Shown here: piece by piece, positions 12,786-59,544 of the stretch | How positions within the stretch are numbered: the first letter of the stretch is position 1 | Layout: each line of letters begins with the position of its first letter | Origin: Dimorphilus gyrociliatus | Taxonomy: Eukaryota > Animalia > Annelida | DNA length: 64,000 nucleotides | Assembly (NCBI GenBank): GCA_904063045.1 | Contig: CAJFCJ010000002.1 | Span: forward strand, 372,001 to 436,000 | Direction: 5' to 3' | The notes under the pieces: model-generated | Told to the model about the DNA's origin: nothing | The model's input: the letters and a program-made list of their open reading frames with translations, nothing else | Database searches by the model: none | Made by a program: the position numbers and the translations under genes

Positions 12786-14261
12786 TTAATTAGTAAATGG
12801 TAAAATTGCAAACATTACTAAAGTAATAATTGTAATACTCAAAGTGAATATAATAATACAAAATCTATCAAAAATTGCAGCTATTTTCCTCCAATCGCTA
12901 CTCCTGGAAGATGATGGATCCTTATTGACTTCAAAAACTGTTTTGTTACCATATTTCATGCCAACAAATCTTCCCATAATCTTAAATACGAAATATTTTA
13001 GTTTTGGAGGTACTCTTGAATTCTTATAATGTAGTTTTACAATTAGGACTGTACAGACAAGAGATATACTCATCACAACCATAATAATTATTATATATAA
13101 GGCAATAATAGGTGCCTCATCGGAATTTCTCGGTAAAATATCATTTAATACCAAGAGAAATACCGTAAAACTCAACATTACAGTCATACACATGCTAATT
13201 CTCTCTCCTCCTTCACTAGGTATAAGAAAGCTAATAATAGAAATGAATGACAAGAGAATGCATGGTAAAACAACAATTATAACAAAATACAACGGTTTTC
13301 TTTTTATTTTCAATGTTACTTTTAAAGAGCAATAATCGTATTCATCGAAACCTGATCTTCTAGTTTTTACAACGTCTGTATCTTCTAAATTCCATTCGGA
13401 GTTTTCGTTATAATTTTCTAAATTGACTTTACTATGATTTGCAAATAATTCAACTTCACTACAAGTTCTTGTCCAAACAGTAACAATTATTTCACAAGTT
13501 TGCCTATCGAATGGGAATTTTCTCATATTCAATGAACAAGATGTTGTAAATCTTCCACCTGGAGAGTAAAGAACCTCACCAGTATAAAATACTTCGGCTT
13601 GAAAATATTTTGTAAATTGTTCATTATAAAATTCAAGGGCGTTATTCTCTTGAACTAAATCTGGTAACCAAACATTTTTAGCCGGTAGTACAATTCTTTG
13701 AATTCCGCTAAAATTATCTGGATTCCACTCTAAATTGATATCTTTCCATATCTATAAGAAAAGAAAAAGAACCAATATATTTTTTATTGGATATCAAATT
13801 CCTATAAAAATTCGAAAACCAATAACAATTTATGTTTAGGCCTATGTTTTTCTCTTTTAAAAATCCTTAATAAAAAGTAAAAAAAAAACGTAGCTATTCT
13901 TAAATTTGTCCTCGTTTAGTATTTTCTTATAAAATAATTATGATTACATTATTAAAAATAATATTTATGCTATCTCTATTTTGATGTATAGGTAAAATAT
14001 TGTAGCACAAACCATAGCTTGCCAAGCGAAGACGCTAAGCTTTTGATCTCTTTCATCAACATTCTGTATTTCAATCAGTTTTAAATCGTACATCACTTCA
14101 ACTGTTTCGCTGAGATTATTCGTAGGTCTTGCCCTTTTTTCGTACCCAAGCATTAAATATCTTATTAAGTCTGTTTCAGTATGATTTGTTCTGGTTGAGC
14201 AGTCGCAGATGATGGCAAAGGCGCCGATGAAAAGTAAATATCTCAGTATACTCTTAAACAT
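12786..14261 (-). CDS. nAChR-like Cys-loop ligand-gated cation channel subunit, non-alpha type (2 exons: 14261-14013, 13751-12786; 404 aa)
   Basis: Signal peptide, loop A WLPD, Cys-loop CSLNMRKFPFDRQTC (C-X13-C), four TM helices, and GER before M2. No vicinal Cys in loop C. Confidence 0.93.
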
Positions 14262-15780: not shown

Positions 15781-16589
15781 TGACGTTTGCGTTCGATATA
15801 TAATCCTTTGGTTGAAAAAAATCAACAAGTGGAAAGAATTATTTTAGATATATGTTTACTTTAAATCTGCTTTCAATCGGAAATTCATAAAAAACGAACC
15901 TAAGAAGTTCACATAGACCAACATCTATTAATAGATTGTTTTAACGTTTGTACAATATTAGCAAAATCTTATCACGTTTCATTCCGCTGTACTTTGGAAT
16001 TCTTAAAAATTATAAGCTAAAATGATAGTAATCTGTTTTAATATAGACGTATTAAGCCCGGAAGCTATCCAATAATTGGGTTAATAGTCACGTCGAGTAA
16101 AATATTAATCATTCATAAAAAATTCAGAATGAAATTTTATGCTTGAATGAAATATTGGAAGAGCGTACTACAGAACTTGTCAATAAACTTTTACAAATAT
16201 TAACAATGAATATTGTATTTTAGACAAAAACTTTATTTCCGATTGAATCATACTCCCACACAAGGCTAAAGCGAATCGATATTACTAGATGACTAATAAC
16301 TGAATACAAACTGCGCCACCTAGCGGTACTCCACCACCTCATTTCATTGCGGTTTACTACTGCAGCTGCAGCGGTTTTTGTGGCGCGTCGATTTTTTTCT
16401 GACGAAGAAAATAATATATCTACAGACAAATTTCAACTTATATTAGCAGTTATATGTCTAATGAAGATTACAGTTATTTGTCTATATATTATTAAGATAT
16501 ATAAATAATATATAGATACTTTTATTAAATAATAAGAGTATCAATAACATTTATATACTTGGTTACAATTATTATTTTTTTCTTGCTGA

Positions 16590-20387: not shown

Positions 20388-22328
20388 AAACAATCAAGTT
20401 ATATCCAACTTTTGATTTAATAATGACTATTTTAAGAAGAAAATATACAAGAAAGCAATAATATTCCTCAAAGGAGCGAAAATTTAATCAAAAAGTGATT
20501 GTTGTTGTTTAACTTGACACCTTGAACAACTTCAATTAGATTGTTTTTAATTAATATTTTACCCTGGCGGTTTATATCAATTGCGAAGTCTTTAAATTAA
20601 CTACAAATTTTAAATATAAAGTTAGAAAATCACTATATATACTGTATATTTTTAATCATTAGGGGGTAGAGAAGATGCGAAAACTCATCCGAATTTTTGC
20701 ACTTAGTATAGACATTCACAGTATTATCTACTCATACTTGATAAGTCGCGTATATTAATAGAATATCATCATTATAAGAAAGTAAACCAAAGGTTAATGG
20801 AGAAATTACATTCCGATGGGAGAAATTTAATTATTTCCTTTTGTTTCCATTCAACAGACAAATAGCAAGCTCCTAGGGGATCTTTAATGAAAACAAATAA
20901 AGAAAAAAAGAGGAACCTAACACTCTAAATGTTCGCATTGTTTTTGTATCGTGTTTAAGCAAATAGGTGGTATAATCATTCTGTTAGTTTATAATTGTGT
21001 AATGGATTTAGAGTGTGGAATTCTCATTTTCTTATTCAAAAAACTCATTTACTATCTCCTTTCTCAATATTAAAAGTAGAAAACTATCCAATGAAAAATG
21101 ACAATTTGGCTAATATATTACATTTTTGAAGGAGGTATATTTGACTTTACGAAGAAAAATAAATATTAATTCAGGTATGATTGATAGATCTGAATTATTT
21201 TGTGAGAAAACGATAATGGATATTTCATAAAGATTATTTATTTAAACCGATTTTGGAGAGCTACTCGTAAAGATCCTCGGTTCATAATCTTTATTAGAAT
21301 CCGATTTCCTTCAGATTCTTTCAGAATTGATTTTAGCTGTTGAACTCTTAGAGGGAAGGTCATTTAGCGGAAAGGAAGTAGAAACTACTAAAAAAAAGAA
21401 AGAATGACGTTTTCTGGCACATACTTCACATTTTGGAAATTAAATTGTCTTATGAATGGGTTAATAATGTCCATCTAACCAAATTTATACTATTCCATGT
21501 TGGCTAAGCTGGTGGTAAAAGTGGATAGTAAGGACGTAGCTATCCAACAAGACTGGAAATTGACATGCGAACTAACTAACGAGTTTTATTTGTTTCCCGT
21601 TCGATATATTCCTCTTCAAATAGTTATTCGATAGCTGATATAACGATACATTTGGTTGCGTGAATTTGTGCAGAATAGATAATTAATCCATGTTTATTTC
21701 TTAAATGATAGAGAACGATTTAAGCCTAGTTTTTGCATAGGAAAACCATTTAGGCAGTCTGATGCATATTTGTGGAGTAGTCTCAATCCTTTTAACCTCT
21801 GATAAAAAATAAAGGATGGAAGTGAAAATTCTGTACATAGCTCACTCAAAATTATTTGATTTTAAGTCACGAGTGCTAAAGTTTTACTTTATTTTGATTG
21901 GATGACTATTAATGAATATCCTATTAAGCTTCTTTATGAGGTATAATGTTATAAAAATCGTATTAATCGATAATAAAAATGAAAGCGTTGTCTATATGTA
22001 TAGATATTTTCATACACAATATTTTCTTAAAAGGAGAGACTTAAGCTAATAGCTCATGGCTCTTCTCTTTCTTATTCTTTCGTACTAATAGTATATTTGT
22101 GCTTCATTGTGTAAATTTATGACAGTAGACAAATCCCAAAAAGACCATTACATATGATACGGAATAAGAAGGGAAATAGTTTTTTAACACCTTACTGAAT
22201 ATTTAAACCTTGAACAGAAACCTGAATTTGGTTCGGCATCTTCAGTATGAGAGCATTAGCCCCTGTCTATATAAATAAATTTTAGAGGGCGTTACTGCTG
22301 CTCGATTTTTGCAGTGGTAGTGGGAAAG

Positions 22329-23381
22329 ATGAGCGATAGACGAGAAGAAATCCAGCTAGCCGATTGGGAAGAAAGATTATGGCTAGTAGCAAAAGTGATT
22401 ATAACATTAGCCGTAGTCTCTACTAATATTTGTCTTCTGATATCTTTGCCGATTGACAAGCGACTAAGAAACTCTGCATCAAGTCTACTCATCTTTAATA
22501 TGTCCTTCGTCGACTTGCTTATTGCTTCCTTCTACCTGACTTTCCTAATAGGTGGAGATATAGGACAAGCTTCTAATTGGTTACCCAACCGATGGAGAAC
22601 TAAACTTTGGTTAACAACATCTTCATTACTTTTATCTATGTCCATCATCACTTCATTAATCGTTAACATCGAAAGATTGATAGTTGTCATCAAACCATCA
22701 TTATCGAACAGAAGTAAAACGTTTGTCAACGTGCTCATGCTAACATTAGCCTGGATAGCATATGCTATCGGAACATTTACTTATTATTCCAACTGTGCGG
22801 AGCAAGCATCTTTGAAAGATTGGAAGAAATTAGTTATGAACGTTGCGGTGTGCGGTTGCGGTATAAAGGCCATTGTTCAATCGCTTGTTATTTTTTTCCT
22901 GCCATCGTCAGTTTCGCTAATTCTAAATATCATTATATATTGCAAGTCCCGGGCCACATATCGTCCCGTGAGACCATCAGCCGAAGAAGAAGAAGATCAA
23001 GAAGTTCCAAGGACTGCTATGACTTTTAGTCCCCTTGTAAAATGTCTTGCTCATAGCCTTTTTATTGTCCTATATCTACCTTTTTTCGTTGCTGCAATTT
23101 GTCGCCAGAGGTCAGTTCCATTAAGTTCACACATAACCTATGCCGTTCAGTGGTTTGCTGCAGTTAATTGCGCAGTAAACCCATTTATCTGGTTATTGGA
23201 TGACGATGTTCGAAAGTCTTATATCCGAGTCGTGAGGACAATTTTTTGCGAAAAGAAAAATAAGCCTATTGAGGGACGAAGTGAAAGCCTGGTCGTTCTA
23301 CAAGATGTTAGATCAGAGGATTCGATGAGAGATTTGGGAGACGCGCTAGCAAGCATGGCGGATGTGGCAGCTATACTATAA
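22329..23381 (+). CDS. Orphan class A (rhodopsin-like) GPCR, intronless
   Basis: Seven hydrophobic segments; TM1 N (VSTNICL), TM2 NMSFVDLL, TM3 end IERL, TM4 W, TM5 FFLPS, TM7 NCAVNPFIW. Confidence 0.85.
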   Translation: MSDRREEIQLADWEERLWLVAKVIITLAVVSTNICLLISLPIDKRLRNSASSLLIFNMSFVDLLIASFYLTFLIGGDIGQASNWLPNRWRTKLWLTTSSLLLSMSIITSLIVNIERLIVVIKPSLSNRSKTFVNVLMLTLAWIAYAIGTFTYYSNCAEQASLKDWKKLVMNVAVCGCGIKAIVQSLVIFFLPSSVSLILNIIIYCKSRATYRPVRPSAEEEEDQEVPRTAMTFSPLVKCLAHSLFIVLYLPFFVAAICRQRSVPLSSHITYAVQWFAAVNCAVNPFIWLLDDDVRKSYIRVVRTIFCEKKNKPIEGRSESLVVLQDVRSEDSMRDLGDALASMADVAAIL

Positions 23382-36365: not shown

Positions 36366-37328
36366 TTAAACGGGACAAACAGTAACAGTTATTGAATGTC
36401 CTCCATTACTTCTCTTTTTTTTCAGTTTATTCAATAGTTTAGTGATATCTCTTCTAACGTCTACTTTTGTATATCCATAGAGGAGAGGATTTAAAATAGG
36501 ATACAGACAGAAAAAATATATTACTATCTTAACAAAACGATTTCTTCCTAAAATATATATAAATCTTTCAGTTGGATCAATAAAGGCTATGAAGGATGCC
36601 ATATAAAAGAATGGAATCCATAGAATTATTAAAACTACGATTTGAGCTAATAGAGATATGGTTCCTGATAAAATTTTACTTTCCATTTCCTTTCTCTTAA
36701 TGTAAATAATTCTTAGAATAGGAATATATAAACATAAACTAAGAAAAGAGAGTGCAATCAGATGTCCCATGACATACAATTTCAGAAATGGCGATCCTTG
36801 AACAGATAAAAAATTGCAGAACACAAAATTTTCACTTGAGAAGTCTTTTTCTAATGTCCTATTCCATCCCATCAATGGTGTTGCACACACGAATAAGCTA
36901 TGTATAATTATAAAGACAATGGTAAACTTTATTCTTCTTTCCGTTATAATAAGGTTATAATGCAGAGGAAATATTATGGCTATAAATCTGTCGACAGTTG
37001 TCATTAGGATAATCAGAAAGCCTATCAAAAAACATGTAAACAATGGATAGTGCGAATACATACAAGAATAGTAGTTTTTAACAGAGGTAGAGTAATAAAT
37101 GATAACGGGTAGAGCAATTAAAGATGTTAATGCGTCATTACAACTAAGACAGACCAGTCCATAATTATTCACTTTATTATAGATATTCTTGTTTCTTATC
37201 ATTATAATGAACAGAAAAATATTTAATATAAAACCTATCGGAGATATTAGCCCAAAGTATATTCTTGCCTCCACTTTAAAATTCTCCCATTCTCTGAAAT
37301 TACTTTCGAAAAAGTCGCTTTTATTCAT
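36366..37328 (-). CDS. Orphan class A GPCR (adenosine-receptor-like features), intronless
   Basis: Seven TM segments; TM2 LSCND, TM3 DRFIAIIFPLHY, TM4 TPLMGWN, TM6 WIP, TM7 NPLLY. Confidence 0.9.
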   Translation of the reverse strand: MNKSDFFESNFREWENFKVEARIYFGLISPIGFILNIFLFIIMIRNKNIYNKVNNYGLVCLSCNDALTSLIALPVIIYYSTSVKNYYSCMYSHYPLFTCFLIGFLIILMTTVDRFIAIIFPLHYNLIITERRIKFTIVFIIIHSLFVCATPLMGWNRTLEKDFSSENFVFCNFLSVQGSPFLKLYVMGHLIALSFLSLCLYIPILRIIYIKRKEMESKILSGTISLLAQIVVLIILWIPFFYMASFIAFIDPTERFIYILGRNRFVKIVIYFFCLYPILNPLLYGYTKVDVRRDITKLLNKLKKKRSNGGHSITVTVCPV

Positions 37329-38935
37329 ATTCAAACAGGTATAGTTAATTGAAAATTCTTCAGGGATTAGGAACTCAGAAGATGTGTCTCTATAGCAGTA
37401 ATCAACAGTTGCCTAATGTCGCTTTTCTCGCAGAATGATTAGACTCAGATTTCGCTTCTAAAGGAAAAGTTGATCGATAAATTTTAGCAGGTAAATAGAT
37501 AACAGTTACTTCATTAGATCTCATCAATATTGTACAATTTAACGCATCAGTTTAGTTTGCCAAGGGTTTTAGATAATTCTATATCTAGACATAAAAAAGA
37601 ATTCAAAGCTAAAGACTCAAGGATAAAATTTGAAACAAACTTCTAATTTGATAGGTCTTTTGTTTTTCATGCTAAGTATCATTTAGTATCGGATTCCTAG
37701 TGAGTTTTTCAAAGAAGAATTCCACAGGGAAAGAATCTTATTTTGACAAACTGTCAAAAGGAAAAGAAGTGATGCAGTTTTTTCGTCACTTAAGCCTTAA
37801 CTCAAGATAGTGATACAATGTAGGGAATTTACTCCCCAAGGATACATTGTCTTTTAAGCTCTGATAAATATATCGAAATTCATTCTGGTCATATTTTACC
37901 CTTTGACCCTTTTCCATTCGGTCATTTATCCTACTTTTTTTTATTTTACTTTTCAGTAATAAAGGTTTTCTCATTAATTTACATCTTAATAAAAAGCGCT
38001 CAATTCTTGAGTGAGCCATATAAAAGGTAAGATTTTGAGTCATTCTTGGAAAATATTTTAAAGGTTCTTAAAAGGAATTATCAATTCGTAATTAGAATTC
38101 TTTCAATCTAACTCTCTTTTATCTCTACGTGATATACTATATTTTCACAGCAAAACAATTACAATAATAGTCAATTACAGACAAAAATATATATTGGGAA
38201 AAATTTATGAAGTTTGTAAATTGAATTACTTTTATCCCTTTTGATGTTAAGTTTTAGTTTGTTTATAGAGAAATTATGATTTATAAAGATAGATGGAGCC
38301 TTTATCGGATTTTCTTAAAACCTTTAGTGGACATTTTAAAAAATAGCCATGATCTGAGAAGAAATTCAATTTAAAGGAAACCAGACAATATTTTTCTTTG
38401 ATATTGTATTCCAATTGAGTTGAAGACAGATACTATTTCATTTTAGTAATGAAGAAATTTGTACTCTATAACCTTCATAGAGGTCAGTTAGCTTTCAAGA
38501 TATCCTGTTTTAGATTATAATCATCGCATATTTTGACAAGTTTTGGATAGGATGATTTATAGCGTTTACTATTTAGGATTAAATATTTAGATCTTGCTTT
38601 AAACAAGTTTAATTAATATTTCTGAAAAAAATCTTCTTTGCTAGCCTTCTCTGGTTTCTTAAAATATCGTTAAATTATTTTTAAAAAACAGAATTTAACA
38701 ATAGCAAACAATATTTGTAGGTCTATATATAGAATGTTCTAGGAAAGGTTCTTTGTATGCTTTACGCGATTAGGATTATAAAGTAAGAATAAAGATGGAA
38801 AATTCGATTCGATTTGTAGAATAGTAGGCTTAAATTTGAACATTGTTGTAATTATTATTTTTGAAACGAGTTATAAATATGTTATGCTTATAGATTGAAG
38901 GTTTCGCAATTATTCTAGGAACAAATTTTTTAAGT

Positions 38936-39361: not shown

Positions 39362-40568
39362 ATTAGATTGCCTGTAGTAGAAAAACGATGTTCGACTCTC
39401 GTAATAAATCAATTGCCTACTATAGTTATCATACTTTTCATTATGACACATCTTATTTTTCGATTTGTATTGATAGTGCTAATATAAATATGTAATACAT
39501 GCAAGTTGGTAAATGTTAGCTTATTTATAAGATGTCATTTACTTTGTGGGAACTCTCTACAAATTGACTGACATTTCTGTCGACTAACGAAAATGTTCCA
39601 AATGGTCGACTTAGTCACTAGTAAAACGTTGTCCTTTATATAGACTAAATCGGTTTCGCCACGAAAACTCGTGGGAAGGAATGGGGCGTCTCATTATTAT
39701 GAGTCCTGTCAAAAGAAAATCGTACTAGATGATGATGTCCAAATTTTATTACATTTGTTCTGATTTTATTGCCTTTTTTGAAATTCTTCGTGAACCTATT
39801 GAAAATCATTGCCCAATAACTTATTTGGCGCTATATTTTATTGAACTTGACAGCGGAAGTGAATAGGACTGATCCTTTGACTTTTCTTATTCAATACTTT
39901 GAAAAGCTGCCATCTACTGGAGACTGATTGTAAAATAAATTGATGGTTATGTGTATTTCCTCTAATCTTGTATTCGATTTGGCTTTTTACCCTTTCTGTA
40001 TCATTTAATACACTTAAAATATCATTGGACATTAGGTTTAGTCCTTTAGATGTAAATCTAAATAACTCTATTTGCGTTAGGAATTTCTCCCCCCTAAATT
40101 GTTTTTAAAATAGTGATTAGTGGGGAGAATAAATGCTTTTTTTTAATTTTATGGGGATTTTTCGCCTGCCTCTTGTATATTTTATTGTGAATAAGCCATT
40201 TTCAGTGAATAAGTACGAATCTGCTTCTATTAGATAATTTTGTGAGTTAGAAAGAAAGCTACTTGAGGGCATTATTAGAGTAAATTGCTGCATTTTTATG
40301 TAAGGAAAGAGTGGGAATGAAGTCATGAAGGAGAGAGAGAAAAATGAACGAAGAAAGAAAGAAAGAGATAGATGGAGTTTGGGATAGAGAGAGAGAGAAA
40401 TAGTGAAAATAATAAAAACGGCTGTTTTGTCGTACTTGGAAAGATATTTACTGTCAGGCTTAATGTAACTAGTAGGAATATAATACTCTTTGACTACTGA
40501 ACATATATTTCAGAGTATCTGTTTCAAGATAGGTCAAGACATAGTTATATATAGTCAATTTTGATTTT

Positions 40569-46175: not shown

Positions 46176-49126
46176 ATCGTACTATACACTTATTCACTTT
46201 TTCGATTTAGCTCTCTAAACCTATTCACAAATTGATCTTTCTCGTTTCTACACAAAGTCACATAAACTATTTAATGAAGTAATTGCTGGTGCCATCTTTG
46301 GGCCTGAATTATCATAACGTCTAAATCCTGCAAACTAACAAGCAAACATTAGAATAGCGAACAATGTAAGAAGAGGCGATGTCAGTATTGCCATCTACAG
46401 TAGTAAATGTTGACCTTGTCAGTTTGAGAACCGTGTATTTCATGTTGTTTGTCTTTTTTGAGTCTTCTTGAAAATCGAAGTCACAAAGTGCTTAAAAAAC
46501 GAATATACAGTTTATATACAAACGAATAAATAACATATTCACAATTATCAATTGATAAAGTGTTATTTTAAATGCTTACGTATAAAAAAAACAGTAAAAT
46601 ATAGTTTATTCGCTTTCTTTAGGATAGATTTACGTAGCAAAGTAAACTATACGAGTACAGATATTTAAGGATTAGTTACTTTTTTGTAATTTTATTCGGT
46701 GATTTAACCAAATGAAAAAAGAGTAAAAAATAAAACCTTTTCTGTTTTGTTCCAATTTGTTCCCCAACGATTTCTTATTTAGTGAAAGACACGTTCTAAA
46801 ACATCAAACAAATTATAAAACATTAATTTATTTGCTAGAATAAATGAGAAATTCAACTTATTTATTAGAATTTCTGTTGTTTTCCAAAAGTGTATTCTTT
46901 TTGTTTCGTTTCTTTAATTATTAACTAATTGCATGTATTTAAACGAATCTTTCATATAGTGATATATTAGTATAGATGTATATAAATATATCAAACTTAA
47001 GGGTCTATATTCAAAAGTCATTAGTCCGCTTTTGTTTATTATATTCAATACTTGGCATGATCATAAGTTTTGATTATAATAGTAAACAAGTCTAAAGAAA
47101 CACATGACAATACTAAAAATTCACATGGTTCCCATGTGGTTTAATATTTCTATATGTCAGTTTTATGAATTTTATTTTTCAAATGGTGCTTTCATTAAGT
47201 TTTTAAATGAATTTCATTGCTTATAAACTTTCAGACCATTTTTTTTCCATAAAATCCTATACGTTTTAAAGAAAAATAGATTTTCTTAAGTCAATACATC
47301 AGAGTAATTATTAAAATACAATTTATATATATGTATATACTGAATATACAGCATAATGTCTATATTACACATACATCATATGACTTTTAATAAATTTAAA
47401 GAAAATTTTCCATCTGCTGTCCGTGAAATTATTAAGCTTTAAAATGATACGCACAGGTGATCAATTTAGCTAAGACATCAAGAATAAAAATTTGTGTTCT
47501 TTGATATAATTATTTACAGTTTGTTTTTTTTCTAGGTATCGTTAATAGGATATTTATACTCGACTGAAGAAAAACTAGGTAGAAGTTTTTTTCTTTTTTT
47601 TTTTCATGCTTTTATCTTTAAGTCCTATATTTTACGATATTTTTTTCTTTTCTTTTAAACTGGATATTTTATATGAGCTGTAAATAATAACTCATTGACG
47701 TTAGATTCGGTATAAGAATCACCACTTGAAAAATGGTATTACTATAAAAAATACAAGTAGAAAATATTCGATTATAGTCAAAGAAAAAAAAACGAACTAG
47801 TTTTTTTAACTCATAAAATAATCTTTGTTTTATTTACTAGAAGGCATAAACTGACAAGCCGTAAATCACAAGAGAAAATAAGAGATTTTGAAAATAAAAG
47901 GTAAATAAGGAAGAGCTTCCTCTGCTTGGTATTTATTGAAAAGTATCAAATATCGATAAAGAGGGGGAGTGAAGAGGCCTAAATAGTTTATAACTAATTT
48001 TACTTTAATACAGTATAAGTATTAAAGCTTTCATTATATATACATATTGTTATACATTTCCATAATCTTTTTTTCGATAGCGTTCTCTCATTCTATACAC
48101 ACTGTACTATTTGTAGTATATTATCTATTTCAACTATTCAGAATCTGCATGTAGACTCAAACCTTTAAAATTTCTTATTATATTCAAAAGTACTTATAAT
48201 TATAATCCCAACAATAAGACAAACAGCTTGTTTTTAAGAGAGATGGTGGAAACCATACAATAGATGCTAAAGCGATGTTTCTTTTACCGCAAAGTTAAAA
48301 TGAGATGTATATATATATTCTTAATTTTGGTATAACTGGTTTTTTTTGCCCTCTAAACATTCTGTCACATTTTGATTTTCTTTTACAATTCGAAAAGAAG
48401 ATAAAAAGAAAATTTAAGAAGATGATTAACTTTGAATACGTTTATATATTTTGTCTTTCTATCACTCTCTTCTTCCCATAATCAACTTAATGATAACAGC
48501 TTGACTAAAGAAATTCGTAAAAATGAAGAAGAAAAAGATTGAGATATATATATATATATATATTCCACTGTATATTAATAAAAATATCGGATAAAGCGTA
48601 AATAGTAATTAGAAAATAAAATTAAGAAAGATAAAGAGGAAACAAAAAATAGTCAGGAGAAAATTTTTCTCAGAATTATGCTTTCATTATTCCTCAAATA
48701 AATCATTTAGCTTAAAAGCTTTGAGGAAGTAAATCTATATCGCTTTATTCTTTTAAAAATTGTATAAAATATATTATCATAAGTATGAAGTGAGCGGAAC
48801 GATTTCTATAATGAATTTTAATGATTCCAAACTTTGTTTGATTTGGTTGCAGATATAACAAAATATATTTATTTACTACGGTACGTGCACTTGAAAACTA
48901 AATATAATAAACGTAATAATTATACGTTATACTTATAAATAGTTTTGATAAAGGAAATTACTACCATATTTATTGGTTGCGTCATAAATTGAAACATCTA
49001 TAAACTAAAGAGTTATGTATATTTAAATAATTTTTCTATTGAACTAAAGATTATTAAGTTAATAAGATACATATCTACGCATTTAGTAGAATGATGACTG
49101 AGAAACGAACATTCTCTTCTTTTATT

Positions 49127-50269
49127 TTAATAGCAAAATCTGCTAAGAATATCCAGTGAACATTGGGTTGGGTCTATACAGCATCTATTTTGTAAAGCTC
49201 CCAGGTGTTCCTTTTTCGCAACTGTCATCATTGGCATTTCCTCAGCAAGAGGAGGTTGAAAGAGTTTACCGCGTTTGACTGTAGATTTAAAAAAGAAATT
49301 AATTAATTTATTAAGTAAACAAGAAATTTAATTCTTTCATATAGACAAAACTCAAGACATATATATATATATATATATATATTCACTTGGTAAATTAAAT
49401 AGCTTTTATTGTCAAACCATCAAGAAAAAAAAGTTGAAATTTAACCAAAAGTTAAGAGAAATGTTATGTGTTTTCATGTTTATCTTCTATTAATTCAAAT
49501 TAATTAGATCCTCTGTAAGTTATAATTATCCTTGCAAAGACCTTGTTTTTCTAGAGAGAGAGAAAGAGAGACAGAGTTTCTATTTTTTTAGATTTATATA
49601 ATTTATTAGCAAATAGTGCTATTTTATGAAGCAGAACATTAATTTTTGTTTAGCTTCTACTATACTATAAATGATATCCAAATACTTAATTTACATGAAT
49701 TTCTAATGAATTCGCAAAAAACATGACGATTTTAAAAAGTCTGAAACGTATTTAACCACTAAGCAGATTTTGAATATGTACAGTATATATATTTATAGCC
49801 ATATAGGCATATTAAATTAATTTTGACTTGTAAAATATCCATTCATCAAATAAAAGGTAATCTTAGATTATAGACCATAGTTAAGTTGTTTAGATAAACA
49901 ATTTATAAAAAGTGTATACAATGTAGATAGTTTGTAAAATATGAAGTTTTCAAATTGTAAAAGTACTGATACAAAAACATATTTAGGATTTGTTTGTTTT
50001 TTTTAGATATTAATTAATATTTATATAATGCTAAAAATTATTCTACTATATAGGAGTAAGACCAATTGAACAAATCATAATTTTACGGGCCAAATACATT
50101 AACAGACATCAAGGAAAATTGACTTACGAAATCCGTCTATGCCTCTTTTTCTCATGGAACAAGCCAAATGATATTGCCTTTGAAAGTTCCTTCCACAATA
50201 ATCAGTTTGGCACGGCGGAAATATTGAAGAATTCAAAAGGAGAAAAAATATTACTGTTAAAGCGATCAT
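49127..50269 (-). CDS. Insulin/relaxin-like prepropeptide (97 aa; exons 50269-50128, 49278-49127)
   Basis: MIALTVIFFLLLNSSIFPPCQT-DYCGRNFQRQYHLACSM-RKR-GIDGFL-KR-GKLFQPPLAEEMPMMTVA-KK-EHLGALQNRCCIDPTQCSLDILSRFCY*. Six-Cys framework with a phase-1 GT-AG intron in the C-peptide. Confidence 0.9.
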
Positions 50270-53200
50270 AGCGACGACAAATCTGGAATGCGCTCTTATT
50301 AACCCCTCCCAGACTCCATCTTGCTTTCGATATAGTAGTTTTATGGTCAGTAAAAAGCTGTTGTTTGTTTTTGTACGACTGTCCTATAAGAGTTGTTATA
50401 AAAAATTAAAATAATGGTAATCATTATATTATTAATTTCTCAACTTAACATTAGGACAAAAAACTAATTTGAACAGTTAGTTTGCATACAAACAGGATTT
50501 TAATATGAAATGAGAGAGTATCGTTCGTGTATTTTATTTCCAAGTTAATTTTTTATTTAAAAAAACAAGTGGCTGTCTTGATTTTAAATCTAATCGAACG
50601 AATAATATTCAAGTTTCAATAATTTAATCAGGATTGCATCAGTTATATCTGTGAATACTTTTAATTTTCTATTTTAGAAGATGAATTTAGTTTAATAATC
50701 ATAATGTATTAGTTAATTGATTTTGCAGATCGACAATTGCTAAATACTCGCTTATAAATTTATCTTCGGAAACTTTATTTGTAGTTTGTATTATGTTCAT
50801 AAAAAAAGTTGAAGTGAAGACGTAACATCATATATATTCTGTAAATGAGCGAATATTCTACTTATAGAAATATATTCATATATACTTTTATAATAATTAT
50901 CTCATACTAAATAAATATTGTCAAAAATATCCGATATCTCTATTAAATTATTTGTAGTTTTCCTAGCAGAAAACTCATGCTACAAGATAAATAAAGTAAT
51001 AAGGGAATGGTCAGTGGGTCAATTGTACGAGTTAGTTTAAAGAAAATCTAGTTGAGAATAGGTGGGCTTCGAATGTTCCAATATCACAAAAAAAAGTTTA
51101 CAGATCTGAAATTAGCATTAGTTTTTGATCTTTGTACCGAATGAAAAACTAATGCTTCGAGGCTGAAGAGAAGAGGAAATATTTCAAACTCTATATTATT
51201 CCTCTATGAGCAATAAATCTATATTTTTTTGCACGAAATCTATTACCGTATTAATATGAAAGTAAAATGACTTAATTTATTCAGTAAACTTTTACAATAT
51301 GGTTGAATTTTTACCAACAGAGCCATCTACTGTATAATAAATAGGCTAATCAGATTTAATTTTTCTTATAATTTATTATCTTAGATATAATATCGTTTTT
51401 TTCTTTTTTTTTAAAAAAAAAAGGTAAAACATGACAAACTATTTCATTCAAAACAAGCTCGAAATCGTCCTTTTTCTGTTTCAATGCATAACTAAAAAAA
51501 AGGGAAAATAAAAAAATTTGGACTGTAAATGAAATCGAGTTTAATTCTTTTTATAGAAATTTACTAATTTATGGCTTGTATTTATTTGGTTTTTATGTGC
51601 ATTATAAATTATGTTGTACAGTTATAGAATATCTCTCAATTGTTATTGGTTTGTAAAGTCTACTTTTGTAGATAGACAAACATGCACACAATATAGAAAT
51701 ATTGTGTGTAGACAATATCATTAATTACTTCCGGAGAATCATTCAATATCTTTGTTGTTCAATAATTTATTGGTTCACAATATAAATAATAAGAAAATGT
51801 TGAGCCTTTAGCTTCTAGACTCGGACCGAAACTAATTTGATTAGTTCATTTCTATTTATGTAGTCATTTTTCTTAATTAAAACAACTGACTTATGTGAAT
51901 AGAAACAATGAACAAAAACTTTGGTACTTTATGTAACAGATGGCGCTAGCGCAACAGATGGACCTACCGTTTACTGTGAGTAACAAGAGAGAAAGTCAAA
52001 TACTATTAGCGGTATTTCTTTTTTTCATTAGAATTTAAAGAAATTAATTGGTATTATTTGTCATGGAAAAGTCAGTATAATTATAAGAAGAAAGTCATCT
52101 TAATGATTTAATTACAAAGGCGTCTGGTATAATATGCCCAATCATATAGTGTACTCTGATTTAATTCCAAGAAATCGACGATAAAGGGAGAATATTCGTA
52201 GAATAAGCACCTAGTTATGATTATATAGAAAACATTTACGATATAGTGCAAAATAAGTAGTTAAAATAGCTTATTTGAAAGGACAAAATATAATTTGATG
52301 TACTCTTGTTATATTTCCGTCGTTGATTGATACAAGCCAAGCTAAAAGGCTTGATTATGGCAAGAAAAATTCCAAATTAAGTCCTATTTACCCCTTAGCC
52401 CATATTTCGGATGACTAAACATTAATTACCTATTCATATTCAAGAATAGAATCTTTCGTAGTCTCCTCATAATAGTCATGACAAATGGAAAGACTAATTT
52501 CTTGTTATCATTTTCAAGCTAGGCTAATAAAATCATGATAATATTTACTAATAGGTAAAAGCATCATATTAGATTTTTTCTTTTTAATTATCATAGCTAC
52601 TATATAAATAACGACGAGAGAGAAAATTTATAAAAAGAGTGTCTCTTTTTATATTTTATCATTTTTCATAAACAACTAGAAGAGAAAATGAATTGACAAA
52701 CGTGCATTTTCTTATAGAAAAAATATTGAAAGAACGTAGAATTTTAAGCATATTCTGATTAATTAAAGAATATATATATATAGATAAATATATATATCAA
52801 TGTGTATTGAATTAAATACGCAAAATTTACATGGTTTACAAGAGAACCTTTACTATTACTTAATGGTATAAGAGAACTAGTCGTATAAATATTCCTTTTT
52901 CTATTAGTCTTTCATTTAGTGTATATTGAATAAATTTGTTTAATTGTTAAAATTTCCTGTTTAAAGAGCAGAAAAACTATAAAGGCAACTTCCAAGATAT
53001 ATATATTTTTTATTAAATCTATGAACAAAACGGCTTGTGGGAAATGAAAGTAAATCTAATTTTTCTCCGTCAACCTTTTGACCCTGACGTCCATTTTACT
53101 ACTTGCAGACAGCTAGACTGTTGACGGCGTTCCTTAATGAAAATATTTTCTATTGATATTTTGACAAAAGCTATGCGTCCAATTGAATTGAATATCTCGC

Positions 53201-55120: not shown

Positions 55121-55181
55121 ATTTAGTCAACGTACAAAAAATGAAGCATCCTTTAGAGTGCAGCCAACTTCTGTTCCTAAT

Positions 55182-55194
55182 CACTAGATGGCGA
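55182..55194 (+). promoter_or_regulatory. CTCF-like motif CACTAGATGGCGA in the divergent TMEM72/Cys-loop receptor promoter
   Basis: Near-perfect match to the CTCF core within a 245-bp head-to-head intergenic gap. Confidence 0.65.
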
Positions 55195-55364: not shown

Positions 55365-57464
55365 ATGAATAAATATCAAATTATTACCGTTCTCATCTTT
55401 TCAACTATTGCTATATCATATGGATCATACGGTTAACAACTTTGAGTTCAAAATTATTATGAAATTTATTAATATTTTAATGATAGCTTTTGTAAATTTC
55501 TTAGATGAACTTCCTGTCTATAAGTTGAAGAAAAGATTGTTACACGGCCGTGAAAAAAGTTTTCTAACTACGAAAGACAGTTCAAACAAATTAAAAGTGT
55601 CTCTCTTACTCCTAATAGCCAGGATTGATAAGTTGGTAAGCAAAATTTAAAAATAAAATTTCTATTGAAATGAATCACAAATAAATAAACCTAAAAATGC
55701 TAAAGTAATGACATACAAATATTAAAATGTAAACATTTATATACAGTCCGAAAAAGATCAAGAACTCACTTCCTACCTTTGGCTATCATTGGTAAGTCTT
55801 TAAATATTTCTTATACTACAGAGAGAGAGAGAGAGAAATCGCTTTTTCAACGTTTTGAATTTGACAGTCCTGGAAAGACGATACCCTAAAATGGAATCCT
55901 TCTTCGTACGGAAATATAACAACGTTCACTACTACACATGATACTCTTTGGATACCTGAGATGATAATTAGAAATACGTAAGCTGTTATAAATTTAGCGA
56001 AGATTTTAGAATATTTGAACGAATTTGTCATTCATAAATTAGAAAAGAACAACCTATTGATATTGGATTAGAGCAAAAAAGAAGAGTTCGGGTATTTAGC
56101 GACGGTAGTGTCAGTTGGTCGACTGCTATGATAGTCAGAACCCATTGCGATGTAAATAATTTTATTCCATTAGCCAATAGTTACGATATATCACTACTTT
56201 TATATTGGGTTGTGATGTAAAATATTTAGATTTTATTACATTTAAATACCTTTTTGAGTATTGCTTGGAATTTACTACATGCAAGTTTATTGTTTCAAGA
56301 TTGATATGACAAACTTTCCATGGGATGTTCAAGTATGTCACGTAGAATTTTCAACTATGACTTACCAAAAGGATATTCAATATGTGCCCGCTTATAATGA
56401 AGTCAGCAGGCAGGTATGAAGTGCATTTCCTTTGAATTCCTATGTTTTTATTGCTCTAAGCATTAAAATTGACGTTAAATTTTTTGTAGGCATTTAAAAA
56501 GAATCCACAGTGGAATTTAATAAAAACAAAACTTAGAACTTACGACATGTTCATTAAAATAGGTGATCACAACGGGACTGGTACAGTCGCGTATGCAACC
56601 TTTATACTTGCAAGACAATCAAGATACTATACAATGATCATAGTTGTCCCATCTTTCGTAATAATAATTGTAACCGGATTTACTTTGTTGCTGCCGTTTA
56701 AAAGTGGAGAGAAAGTTTCTCTAAATATAACCGTTCTTTTATCCTATACAATGCTATTAATATTAATGTCCAGCATTATGCCCGAAAATTCATTAAACTT
56801 TCCTATCCTGGGTAAGTTTTATTATTTATTATGTAAAGGATAATTATTTGCAAATGGTCTGTCGTAAAGAATTCAAAAGCATGCGTGGTTCGGTAAGCCA
56901 TAAAATAAATATAACACTTATTTTCTTGAATATAATATCATAGAAATAACAAGCTAAAAATATCAATTGTTTTCAACAGCTCTACATTTGGTTCTCAATA
57001 TGATAATGTCGGGGATCATTCTTATTTCTACAGTATGTCATCAACGACTATATTTTACGTCTCCTGATAAACCTCTACCAAAGATGATTGATCCAATAGC
57101 TTTAGTTTATCTATCGCAAATATGGAACTTTGTCACATGTTCAAAAACAAAACCACCCTTGAATAACATGAATTCAAAAGTATCGAGCAGTCTTTCTGTT
57201 ACCGATGCCGTCAACGAATATGAAGAAAATTCGGCACAAGATAAGTCGAAGAATGAAAATGTTGAAGAAGAAGATGCTATACAACTTCATGAGAAGAAAG
57301 TACAGAAAGGAATTAGTATTCTTGAAAATTATTATTTCGTATTTTACATGCTTTTATTCTTTATCTACATAACTGTAGTATTCTCAAATATTGCCCGTTC
57401 ACCTGGTGCACATGGCATCGATGATAAAATACACTTTTCTCCGGCATATGATAAGGAAATTTAA
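55365..57464 (+). CDS. Divergent nAChR-like Cys-loop receptor subunit (about 8 exons)
   Basis: Signal exon MNKYQIITVLIFSTIAISYGSY, SWKDDTLKWNP...WIPE, Cys-loop CD|IDMTNFPWDVQVC, M1 YYTMIIVVP, GEKVSL before M2, and M3/M4. Confidence 0.9.
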
Positions 57465-58980: not shown

Positions 58981-59544
58981 ATGTCAAAATCGACAACTAT
59001 ACGGGAAGCTTTAGGGAAGTTAGCAGAAAAAACACACGGAAAGAAATTGTCTGATATTACCGATGTATTATTGAACGCTCAATACCCTCCCATTGAAAAA
59101 ATGGATGCAAATCTTTCACAATTGACTGCTTGTTCTAAACTATCCTTATCAACCAATTGTATCGAAAAGATATCAAACTTACACGGTCTACGAAATTTAC
59201 GTATACTTTCTCTGGGTCGTAATCAAATTAAAAGTTTATCTGGAGTTGAGGCTGTAGGAGAAACTTTACAAGAATTGTGGATATCGTATAATTTGATTGA
59301 AAAATTGAAAGGTGTTGGTAATTTGAAAAAACTGCAAGTTCTATATATTAATCACAACCTCGTTAAAGATTTGACTGAAGTTCAAAGGTTAGCCGACGTA
59401 CTCAGCTTAAGGGAGCTAACCATGATAGGAAATCCTATTGAAGAAAAACACTCAAATGAAGGAGATTGGAGAGATTTAATTAGTCAAAAGCTTCACCAAA
59501 TAAAGCAACTAGATAGCATTCCTTTGATTAGGATGGACAATTAA
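58981..59544 (+). CDS. DNAL1: Dynein axonemal light chain 1 (LRR), intronless
   Basis: TTIREAL...[13 protein letters not shown]...[11 protein letters not shown]...LSLGRNQIK...[16 protein letters not shown]...GNPIEEKH. Confidence 0.96.

Follow-up and report, generated by a model that had tools for sequence, protein, structure and literature searches.

Genes of the insulin superfamily have a common phase-1 intron in the C-peptide, and in relaxin/Dilp8-type genes this is the only intron and the B chain comes directly after the signal peptide, while in Dilp7-type genes a phase-2 intron and a spacer are added (PMC11863921). An alanine before the second B-chain cysteine is recorded for starfish RGP2, Dilp8 and the relaxin-like peptide (RLP) of Owenia fusiformis, and the latter is the one annelid relaxin-type peptide named in that survey, which covered other annelids and not Dimorphilus gyrociliatus (PMC11863921). 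For D. gyrociliatus the full neuropeptide FASTA of the genome paper holds five insulin-like peptides (ILPs), of which ILP1–3 are of the MIP type with eight cysteines, ILP4 is of the Dilp7 type and ILP5 has six cysteines. Here we describe a two-exon gene on the minus strand of a 64,000-nt stretch of the D. gyrociliatus genome (assembly GCA_904063045.1, contig CAJFCJ010000002.1, positions 372,001 to 436,000 of the forward strand; hereafter the window, in which all positions are given). Judged from the predicted precursor its product is very probably a member of the insulin superfamily, and we hold with about even confidence that it is a functional gene for a secreted prohormone that belongs to the insulin/relaxin superfamily and within it most likely to the relaxin/Dilp8 (starfish RGP-like) type.

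Reading and translation of the minus strand places exon 1 at 50269–50128 and exon 2 at 49278–49127. Exon 1 contains 47 codons and one nucleotide and is followed by a GTAAGT donor, exon 2 is preceded by a pyrimidine tract and a CAG acceptor, and the 142 and 152 nt together make 294 nt, i.e. 97 codons and a TAA stop. The split codon, C/TC, encodes Leu48 and is cut after its first base, which puts the intron in phase 1, six residues past the RKR site. The complete two-exon precursor of 97 residues given in a preliminary description of this DNA was thereby reproduced. The same description had called the gene hidden from the track of open reading frames (ORFs), which is correct, as the listing shows just a 56-aa and a 36-aa ORF at the locus and the gene was therefore missed.

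Contigs of three runs (X1, X2 and X3, representing two organisms) were aligned to positions 47800–51800. The X3 contig, 760 nt long and with a k-mer depth of 234, is 100% identical to the window and covers 48652–49278 and 50128–50260. X1 and X2, from the same sample of the other organism, gave one contig each, 586 nt long and about 93% identical, covering 48884–49278 and 50128–50319. All three omit exactly the 849 nt between 49278 and 50128, with CT..AC at the borders on the plus strand and thus GT..AG on the gene strand. Except for two thin contigs, coverage is restricted to the exons with bare flanks, and because it is confined in this way the contigs of X1–X3 are taken as RNA-derived transcript assemblies. 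The 50128/49278 junction that had been predicted is present in contigs of three runs and two organisms, spliced contigs joining the two exons exist, and the gene is really transcribed and spliced as predicted. The features of the gene are, in the order of transcription:

50270–50319, minus strand: 5' untranslated region (UTR), minimum extent, the X1/X2 contig extending to 50319.
50204–50269, minus strand: start codon and predicted signal peptide, residues 1–22 including Cys20 (translation and Kyte-Doolittle profile, cleavage placed by the -3/-1 rule).
50153–50203, minus strand: predicted B chain, residues 23–39, 17 aa, C25-G-X10-C37, R27 and R31 standing in the R-x3-R register of relaxin (translation).
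50144–50152, minus strand: R40-K41-R42, putative convertase site closing the B chain (translation).
49279–50127, minus strand: intron of 849 nt, GT..AG, phase 1, within the C-peptide (X1, X2 and X3 contigs).
49217–49278, minus strand: remaining predicted C-peptide, consisting of the end of the Leu48 codon, the K49-R50 site and residues 51–68 (translation).
49211–49216, minus strand: K69-K70 dibasic site before the A chain (translation).
49130–49210, minus strand: predicted A chain, residues 71–97, 27 aa, C80-C81-X5-C87-X8-C96 followed by Tyr97 (translation).
49127–49129, minus strand: TAA stop (sequence).
48652–49126, minus strand: 3'UTR of about 475 nt, the window-identical X3 contig reaching 48652.

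Comparison with the approximately 93%-identical relative demonstrates that the gene is under purifying selection, with both chains unchanged and a C-peptide that is free to vary. The seven listed coding differences are all substitutions, five of them synonymous (P19, R31, A59, Q86 and I91) and two replacements (M64V and A68T). Both replacements are located within the C-peptide, and neither the protein sequence of the two chains nor any cysteine codon is altered; the B chain differs only at R31 and the A chain at Q86 and I91, in each case synonymously. The ratio of nonsynonymous to synonymous differences per site (pN/pS) comes to 0.10 (Fisher p = 0.004). Indels are absent from the coding sequence, all six (6/6) being found in the 3'UTR, which also has 19 listed substitutions, and the substitutions amount to 7 in 222 nt of coding sequence versus 19 in 211 nt of UTR (p = 0.014). 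Close relatives with frameshifts or without some of the cysteines had been named as evidence that would speak against the gene, and the single available relative keeps the frame and every cysteine codon.

The two thin X3 contigs (depth 3–4) are located at 49446–49604, in the intron, and at 50473–50638, about 200 nt upstream of the gene, and may represent unspliced precursor or low-level intergenic transcription. The intron also contains (AT)n and (CT)n microsatellites at 49352–49383 and 49548–49570, and read mapping skipped repeats about there. At 50299–50319 on the minus strand an out-of-frame upstream ATG (at 50319) opens a mini-ORF of six codons ending with TAA, 50 nt ahead of the main start; this ATG is the exact start of the relative's transcript contig, and the mini-ORF may be in the 5' leader. 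An AATAAA is located directly after the stop (49121–49126, minus strand), the contigs nevertheless continue to 48884 (X1/X2) and 48652 (X3), and either polyadenylation may be alternative or the first signal may go unused.

The placement in the family rests on the layout and cysteine frame of the precursor, on the conserved intron and on similarity with the cysteines fixed. The predicted precursor begins with a hydrophobic leader, with Kyte-Doolittle 9-mer means of 2.4–3.2 over residues 1–13, a core of residues 2–12 and then a polar stretch. Thr22 and Cys20 satisfy the -1/-3 rule, which makes a signal peptide of 22 residues, cleaved after Thr22, plausible. Leader and B chain adjoin directly, and the B chain shows the C-X11-C spacing of the superfamily, as had been proposed, with the glycine that is usual after the first cysteine (C25-G26-X10-C37), and an alanine precedes its second cysteine (L35-A36-C37). 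Basic sites are present at both boundaries in the order B-C-A, namely R40-K-R42 and K69-K70, with an internal K49-R50, and the RKR, KR and KK processing sites of the preliminary description are thus found at residues 40–42, 49–50 and 69–70. The A chain ends with FCY, and its second half, C-S-x3-L-x3-C, fits a PROSITE-like signature. A search of the 64-kb window in six frames gave one match to CC-X(3-5)-C-X8-C, the one in this gene, and the chance expectation of the A-chain motif is 0.075 per simulated 64-kb window, or 0.01 with the stricter PROSITE-like second half. The gene has the structure of the relaxin/Dilp8 type, with a single phase-1 intron and a leader running straight into the B chain. 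A Dilp7-type assignment was considered and rejected, as there is no phase-2 intron, no spacer or W-rich motif, no W-E-E after the third A-chain cysteine and no C-terminal extension with an eighth cysteine, and a MIP-type assignment was rejected because the extra cysteine pair is absent.

Similarity beyond the cysteines was evaluated by Smith-Waterman scores against shuffles in which Cys and Gly of the B chain, and Cys of the A chain, were kept fixed, using six comparators whose mature chains were taken from sequences printed in paper supplements. BLASTP had not aligned this A chain with that of relaxin-2, owing to its short length and the gaps required, and shuffles were used instead. The values obtained are:

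Owenia fusiformis RLP: B chain p <= 5e-5 (0 of 20,000 shuffles, score 47), A chain p = 0.31.
Starfish RGP2: B chain p = 0.008, A chain p = 0.39.
Human relaxin-2: B chain p = 0.02, A chain p = 0.001.
D. gyrociliatus ILP1: B chain p = 0.05, A chain p = 0.0016.
D. gyrociliatus ILP4: B chain p = 0.04, A chain p = 0.11.
D. gyrociliatus ILP5: B chain p = 0.79, A chain p = 0.14.

The B chain of Owenia RLP is the best and most specific match, with 25.8 bits in pairwise BLASTP and a shared YCGRN...AC.M, followed by that of RGP2 (p ranging from 0.0006 to 0.008), which has ACSM and then a basic site in common with the peptide described here. The alignment with the human relaxin-2 A chain has 10 identities in 22 aligned positions, including AL.N[KR]CC and L.RFC. 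The vertebrate relaxin cassette is R-x3-R-x2-I/V, and the B chain has arginines at Cys+2 and Cys+6 (R27 and R31, CGR-x3-R) in the vertebrate register, where the Owenia peptide has R and K. The B chain thus appears relaxin/RGP-like and the A chain seems uninformative on subtype. Of the resemblance to relaxin or gonad-stimulating peptides claimed in the preliminary description, the B-chain part stands, through Owenia RLP, RGP2, the CGR-x3-R register and the leader-adjacent position, but the A chain does not discriminate, with similar values for relaxin-2 and ILP1.

A number of observations weigh against the relaxin/Dilp8-type reading. The A chain resembles the insulin/MIP-type ILP1 as closely as it does relaxin-2 and shows no significant similarity to Owenia RLP, and the third position of the relaxin cassette (I/V at Cys+9) is occupied by His. 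A seventh cysteine, C20, is located in or just after the leader, five residues before C25, and a leader cut before Cys20 would leave seven cysteines. The translation has CC-X5-C-X8-C in the A chain, as first described, and not the canonical CC-X3-C-X8-C (PROSITE PS00262 type). In the comparison with the relative, differences closer than about 32 nt to the ends of the contig pieces are unlisted, and up to nine near the junction or the outer ends are unplaced. The protein searches, which were done exon by exon and not with the joined precursor (the insulin-family profile PF00049 spans both chains), were also negative. Pfam gave no family at E <= 1 for either exon alone, a word-indexed protein search with the 56-aa exon-1 ORF (length window up to 98 aa) gave no candidate, and phmmer with the exon-2 peptide gave no match among 1.84 billion protein representatives, not even itself, and the gene product is therefore not in this collection. 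Exon 2 had no usable match in the ESM Atlas feature search and no match in the PDB sequence search, and in the latter exon 1 matched only weak C2H2 zinc-finger look-alikes.

The zinc-finger resemblance is a chance look-alike. It comes from 50143–50212 on the minus strand, where the C-X4-C-X3-F-X5-L of the leader and B chain imitates the first half of a C2H2 finger, with weak PDB matches to KLF4 and Zif268 (summed E = 0.02). A C2H2 finger (C-X2-4-C-X12-H-X3-5-H) was rejected since the zinc-binding His pair is absent, with Ser at the first His position, the per-finger E is above 10 and the segment follows a secretory leader.

The enlarged A-chain ring is unusual but precedented. Dilp7-type precursors of the sea urchin Strongylocentrotus and the crinoid Antedon have CC-X5-C-X8-C and CC-X5-C-X9-C, respectively (PMC11863921 supplement), and other accepted members deviate in their spacing as well, with CC-X4-C in protostome Dilp7-type peptides, C-X5-C in Dilp8 and C-X10-C in the second interval of RGP2. 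Membership of the superfamily therefore does not strictly demand the literal CC-X3-C-X8-C. The unusual spacing to which the preliminary description drew attention is real, but it is less novel than it was made out to be.

The best surviving alternative is that the gene is a divergent, lineage-specific paralogue of the insulin/MIP type, whose product would act on the insulin-receptor tyrosine kinase or be a partly unprocessed IGF-like peptide, the relaxin-like B chain being convergent. The similarity of the A chain to MIP-type ILP1, with a common C-S-L after the third cysteine, is on a par with that to relaxin-2, and a lone phase-1 intron within the C-peptide is found across the whole superfamily, insulin-type genes included, so that it excludes only the Dilp7 type. 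A caution given in PMC11863921 is that long branches and convergence make the relaxin/Dilp8 clade indistinct where taxa lack LGR3, and an insulin receptor is expressed in D. gyrociliatus (PMC13602260). On the other hand, the similarity of the B chain to ILP1, ILP4 and ILP5 is marginal or absent, in contrast to that with Owenia RLP, the extra cysteine pair of ILP1–3 is missing, and RGP2 and RLP, not the MIP types, are matched by the very short N-terminus of the B chain and by the basic site right after AC-S-M. We regard a paralogue of this kind as possible to an appreciable degree, though short of probable.

A genuine secreted peptide that is rich in cysteine but without homology to insulin, for instance a lineage-specific signalling or defence peptide with the cysteine frame arisen by chance, would account for the failure of both exons to match any sequence or hidden Markov model, for the departure of CC-X5-C from the family signature and for the seven cysteines of the precursor, and as very many windows were scanned a rare motif could arise by chance somewhere. 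This is nevertheless unlikely, since the similarity to several family members is significant beyond the cysteines and in both chains, the position and phase of the intron match the family, the basic sites are located exactly at the B/C and C/A boundaries, the replacements in the relative are restricted to the C-peptide, and the accepted sea urchin and crinoid precursors already have the enlarged ring. That the locus is transcribed but non-coding or decaying, with a functionless frame of 97 codons, is suggested by its AT-rich, gene-poor setting and its absence from the protein collections searched and the published neuropeptide list, but is very improbable in view of the pN/pS of 0.10 with five synonymous and two replacement changes, the lack of coding indels against six in the adjoining UTR, the cysteine codons that are all kept in the relative, and the spliced contig of high k-mer depth in two organisms.

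The product would probably be processed along the following lines. The leader would be removed in the endoplasmic reticulum, probably after Thr22, whereby Cys20 is discarded and six cysteines are left, and the propeptide might then fold with the three disulfides of the family, C25–C81, C37–C96 and the intrachain C80–C87. Prohormone convertases could cut at RKR (40–42) and KK (69–70), possibly also at KR (49–50), after which a carboxypeptidase would trim the basic residues, and a hormone or neuropeptide made of a B chain of 17 residues linked to an A chain of 27 would be secreted. The CC-X5-C ring has two extra residues, with a proline, which are expected to widen the turn that joins the two helices of the A chain. 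The most likely receptor would be one coupled to G proteins (GPCR), of the type with LDLa and leucine-rich repeat (LRR) domains (RXFP/LGR3-like) and not the insulin receptor kinase, which is the main alternative.

The gene is situated in a region with few other genes. There is no ORF of at least 90 aa between about 42.7 and 56.5 kb and no recognisable exon ORF at about 46.2–55.4 kb, the nearest recognisable coding ORFs being a Sel1-like gene that ends near 46.2 kb and exons of a Cys-loop channel from about 56.3 kb. A CTCF-like motif, CCASYAGRKGGCR, is enriched in the window, with 18 matches at up to two mismatches versus 3.8 expected, a number reached in 0 of 100 shuffles. The matches span 8416–59518, e.g. 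39908–39920, 16314–16326 and 55181–55193, and most have TAGATGGC[GA] in common; those near the gene start at 46389, 47408, 51321 and 55181, and the closest on each side are:

47408–47420, minus strand: CTCF-like match nearest downstream of the gene, two mismatches.
51321–51333, minus strand: CTCF-like match nearest upstream of the gene, two mismatches.

The gene-poor stretch with flanking CTCF-like sites is thus roughly as was first described. Two apparently intronless ORFs for class-A (rhodopsin-type) GPCRs are found in the window, at 22314–23381 on the plus strand and 36366–37334 on the minus strand (7tm_1 E = 8e-15 and 5e-17), and for the latter, read from its first ATG, there is no exact gene product on record. 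Exons of Cys-loop ligand-gated channels on both sides of the gene and a small ORF with LRR repeats (LRR_4/LRR_8) downstream are located at 12786–13532 (minus strand), 56261–57464 (plus strand) and 58981–59544 (plus strand). The LRR-repeat ORF showed no seven-transmembrane part, and therefore nothing suggests an LGR receptor beside the peptide gene. No paralogue was detected when both exons were searched against the 64-kb window with tblastn.

The peptide is not among the five ILPs in the complete neuropeptide FASTA of the D. gyrociliatus genome paper, and a literature search gave no paper linking Dimorphilus to a relaxin-type peptide. The gene would be a new and apparently unannotated member of a well-known family and not a new kind of system. 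It would be the sixth insulin-family gene of D. gyrociliatus and the second annelid candidate of the relaxin type, and it illustrates how short hormone genes of two exons are overlooked by gene annotation and by BLAST-based surveys of neuropeptides. Signalling of the relaxin type has been traced back as far as the ancestor of the bilaterians, and in Spiralia it is based on very few peptides. We tentatively propose, as a somewhat doubtful extension, that the product is a genuine spiralian relaxin/Dilp8-type hormone, second in annelids after that of Owenia, in a minimal form of 17+27 residues that keeps the C-G-R-x3-R receptor-contact register of vertebrate relaxin and signals via an LDLa/LRR GPCR of this miniature worm, either an LGR3 orthologue or an orphan of the GRL101 type. 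If this is true it would offer a very small, synthesisable ligand for deorphanising this receptor class in Spiralia, and the mature peptide is short enough for synthesis and for trials on LGR-type and insulin receptors.

Compared with the described systems, the MIP-type peptides of the same species (ILP1–3) have the B-C-A layout, the CG after the first cysteine and the C-S-L after the third A-chain cysteine in common with the peptide described here, but they have CC-X3-C and eight cysteines, the extra pair being formed by the A-chain C-x-CC and an upstream cysteine in a long B-chain N-terminus. The Dilp7-type peptides, which D. gyrociliatus already has in the clear form of ILP4, share an extra cysteine a few residues before the first B-chain cysteine and an enlarged ring, which is X4 in protostomes and among the echinoderm CC-X5-C members X5-C-X8-C in Strongylocentrotus exactly as here, but they are distinguished by their own extra phase-2 intron, a spacer between signal peptide and B chain, the W-E-E motif and a C-terminal extension with the eighth cysteine. 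Vertebrate relaxin-2 (RLN2, the ligand of RXFP1) has C-G-R-x3-R in its B chain in the same register, and A-L-x-N-[KR]-C-C and the terminal L-x-R-F-C in its A chain, but its third cassette residue is I/V where His is found here, its ring is X3 and not X5, and its B chain carries long extensions at both the N- and the C-terminus. Starfish RGP2, a ligand of RXFP/LGR3, has a precursor of about 110–120 aa with the same intron, a short B chain with C-G, F at Cys+4 and A-C-S-M followed immediately by x-K-R, and nine residues ahead of the A-chain CC, which starts CC-I. It is without R-x3-R, and its CC-X3-C-X10-C is lengthened in the second interval rather than in the ring. RGP2 comes from a deuterostome, and both its role in inducing spawning and its receptor have been demonstrated. 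Owenia fusiformis RLP (CAC9481874.1, assigned to the relaxin/Dilp8 type in PMC11863921) differs in its 247-aa precursor with a C-peptide of about 190 residues, against 97 aa and about 26 residues here, and in its A chain, which is CC-X3-C-X8-C with a G-I motif and not significantly similar. Like the gene described here it is from an annelid, is interrupted within the C-peptide by a single phase-1 intron, has its B chain directly after the signal peptide, and shows Y-C-G-R-N at the first cysteine, basic residues at Cys+2 and Cys+6, A-C-x-M before the basic site, and KKR at the position of RKR (40–42), where starfish RGP2 has AKR.

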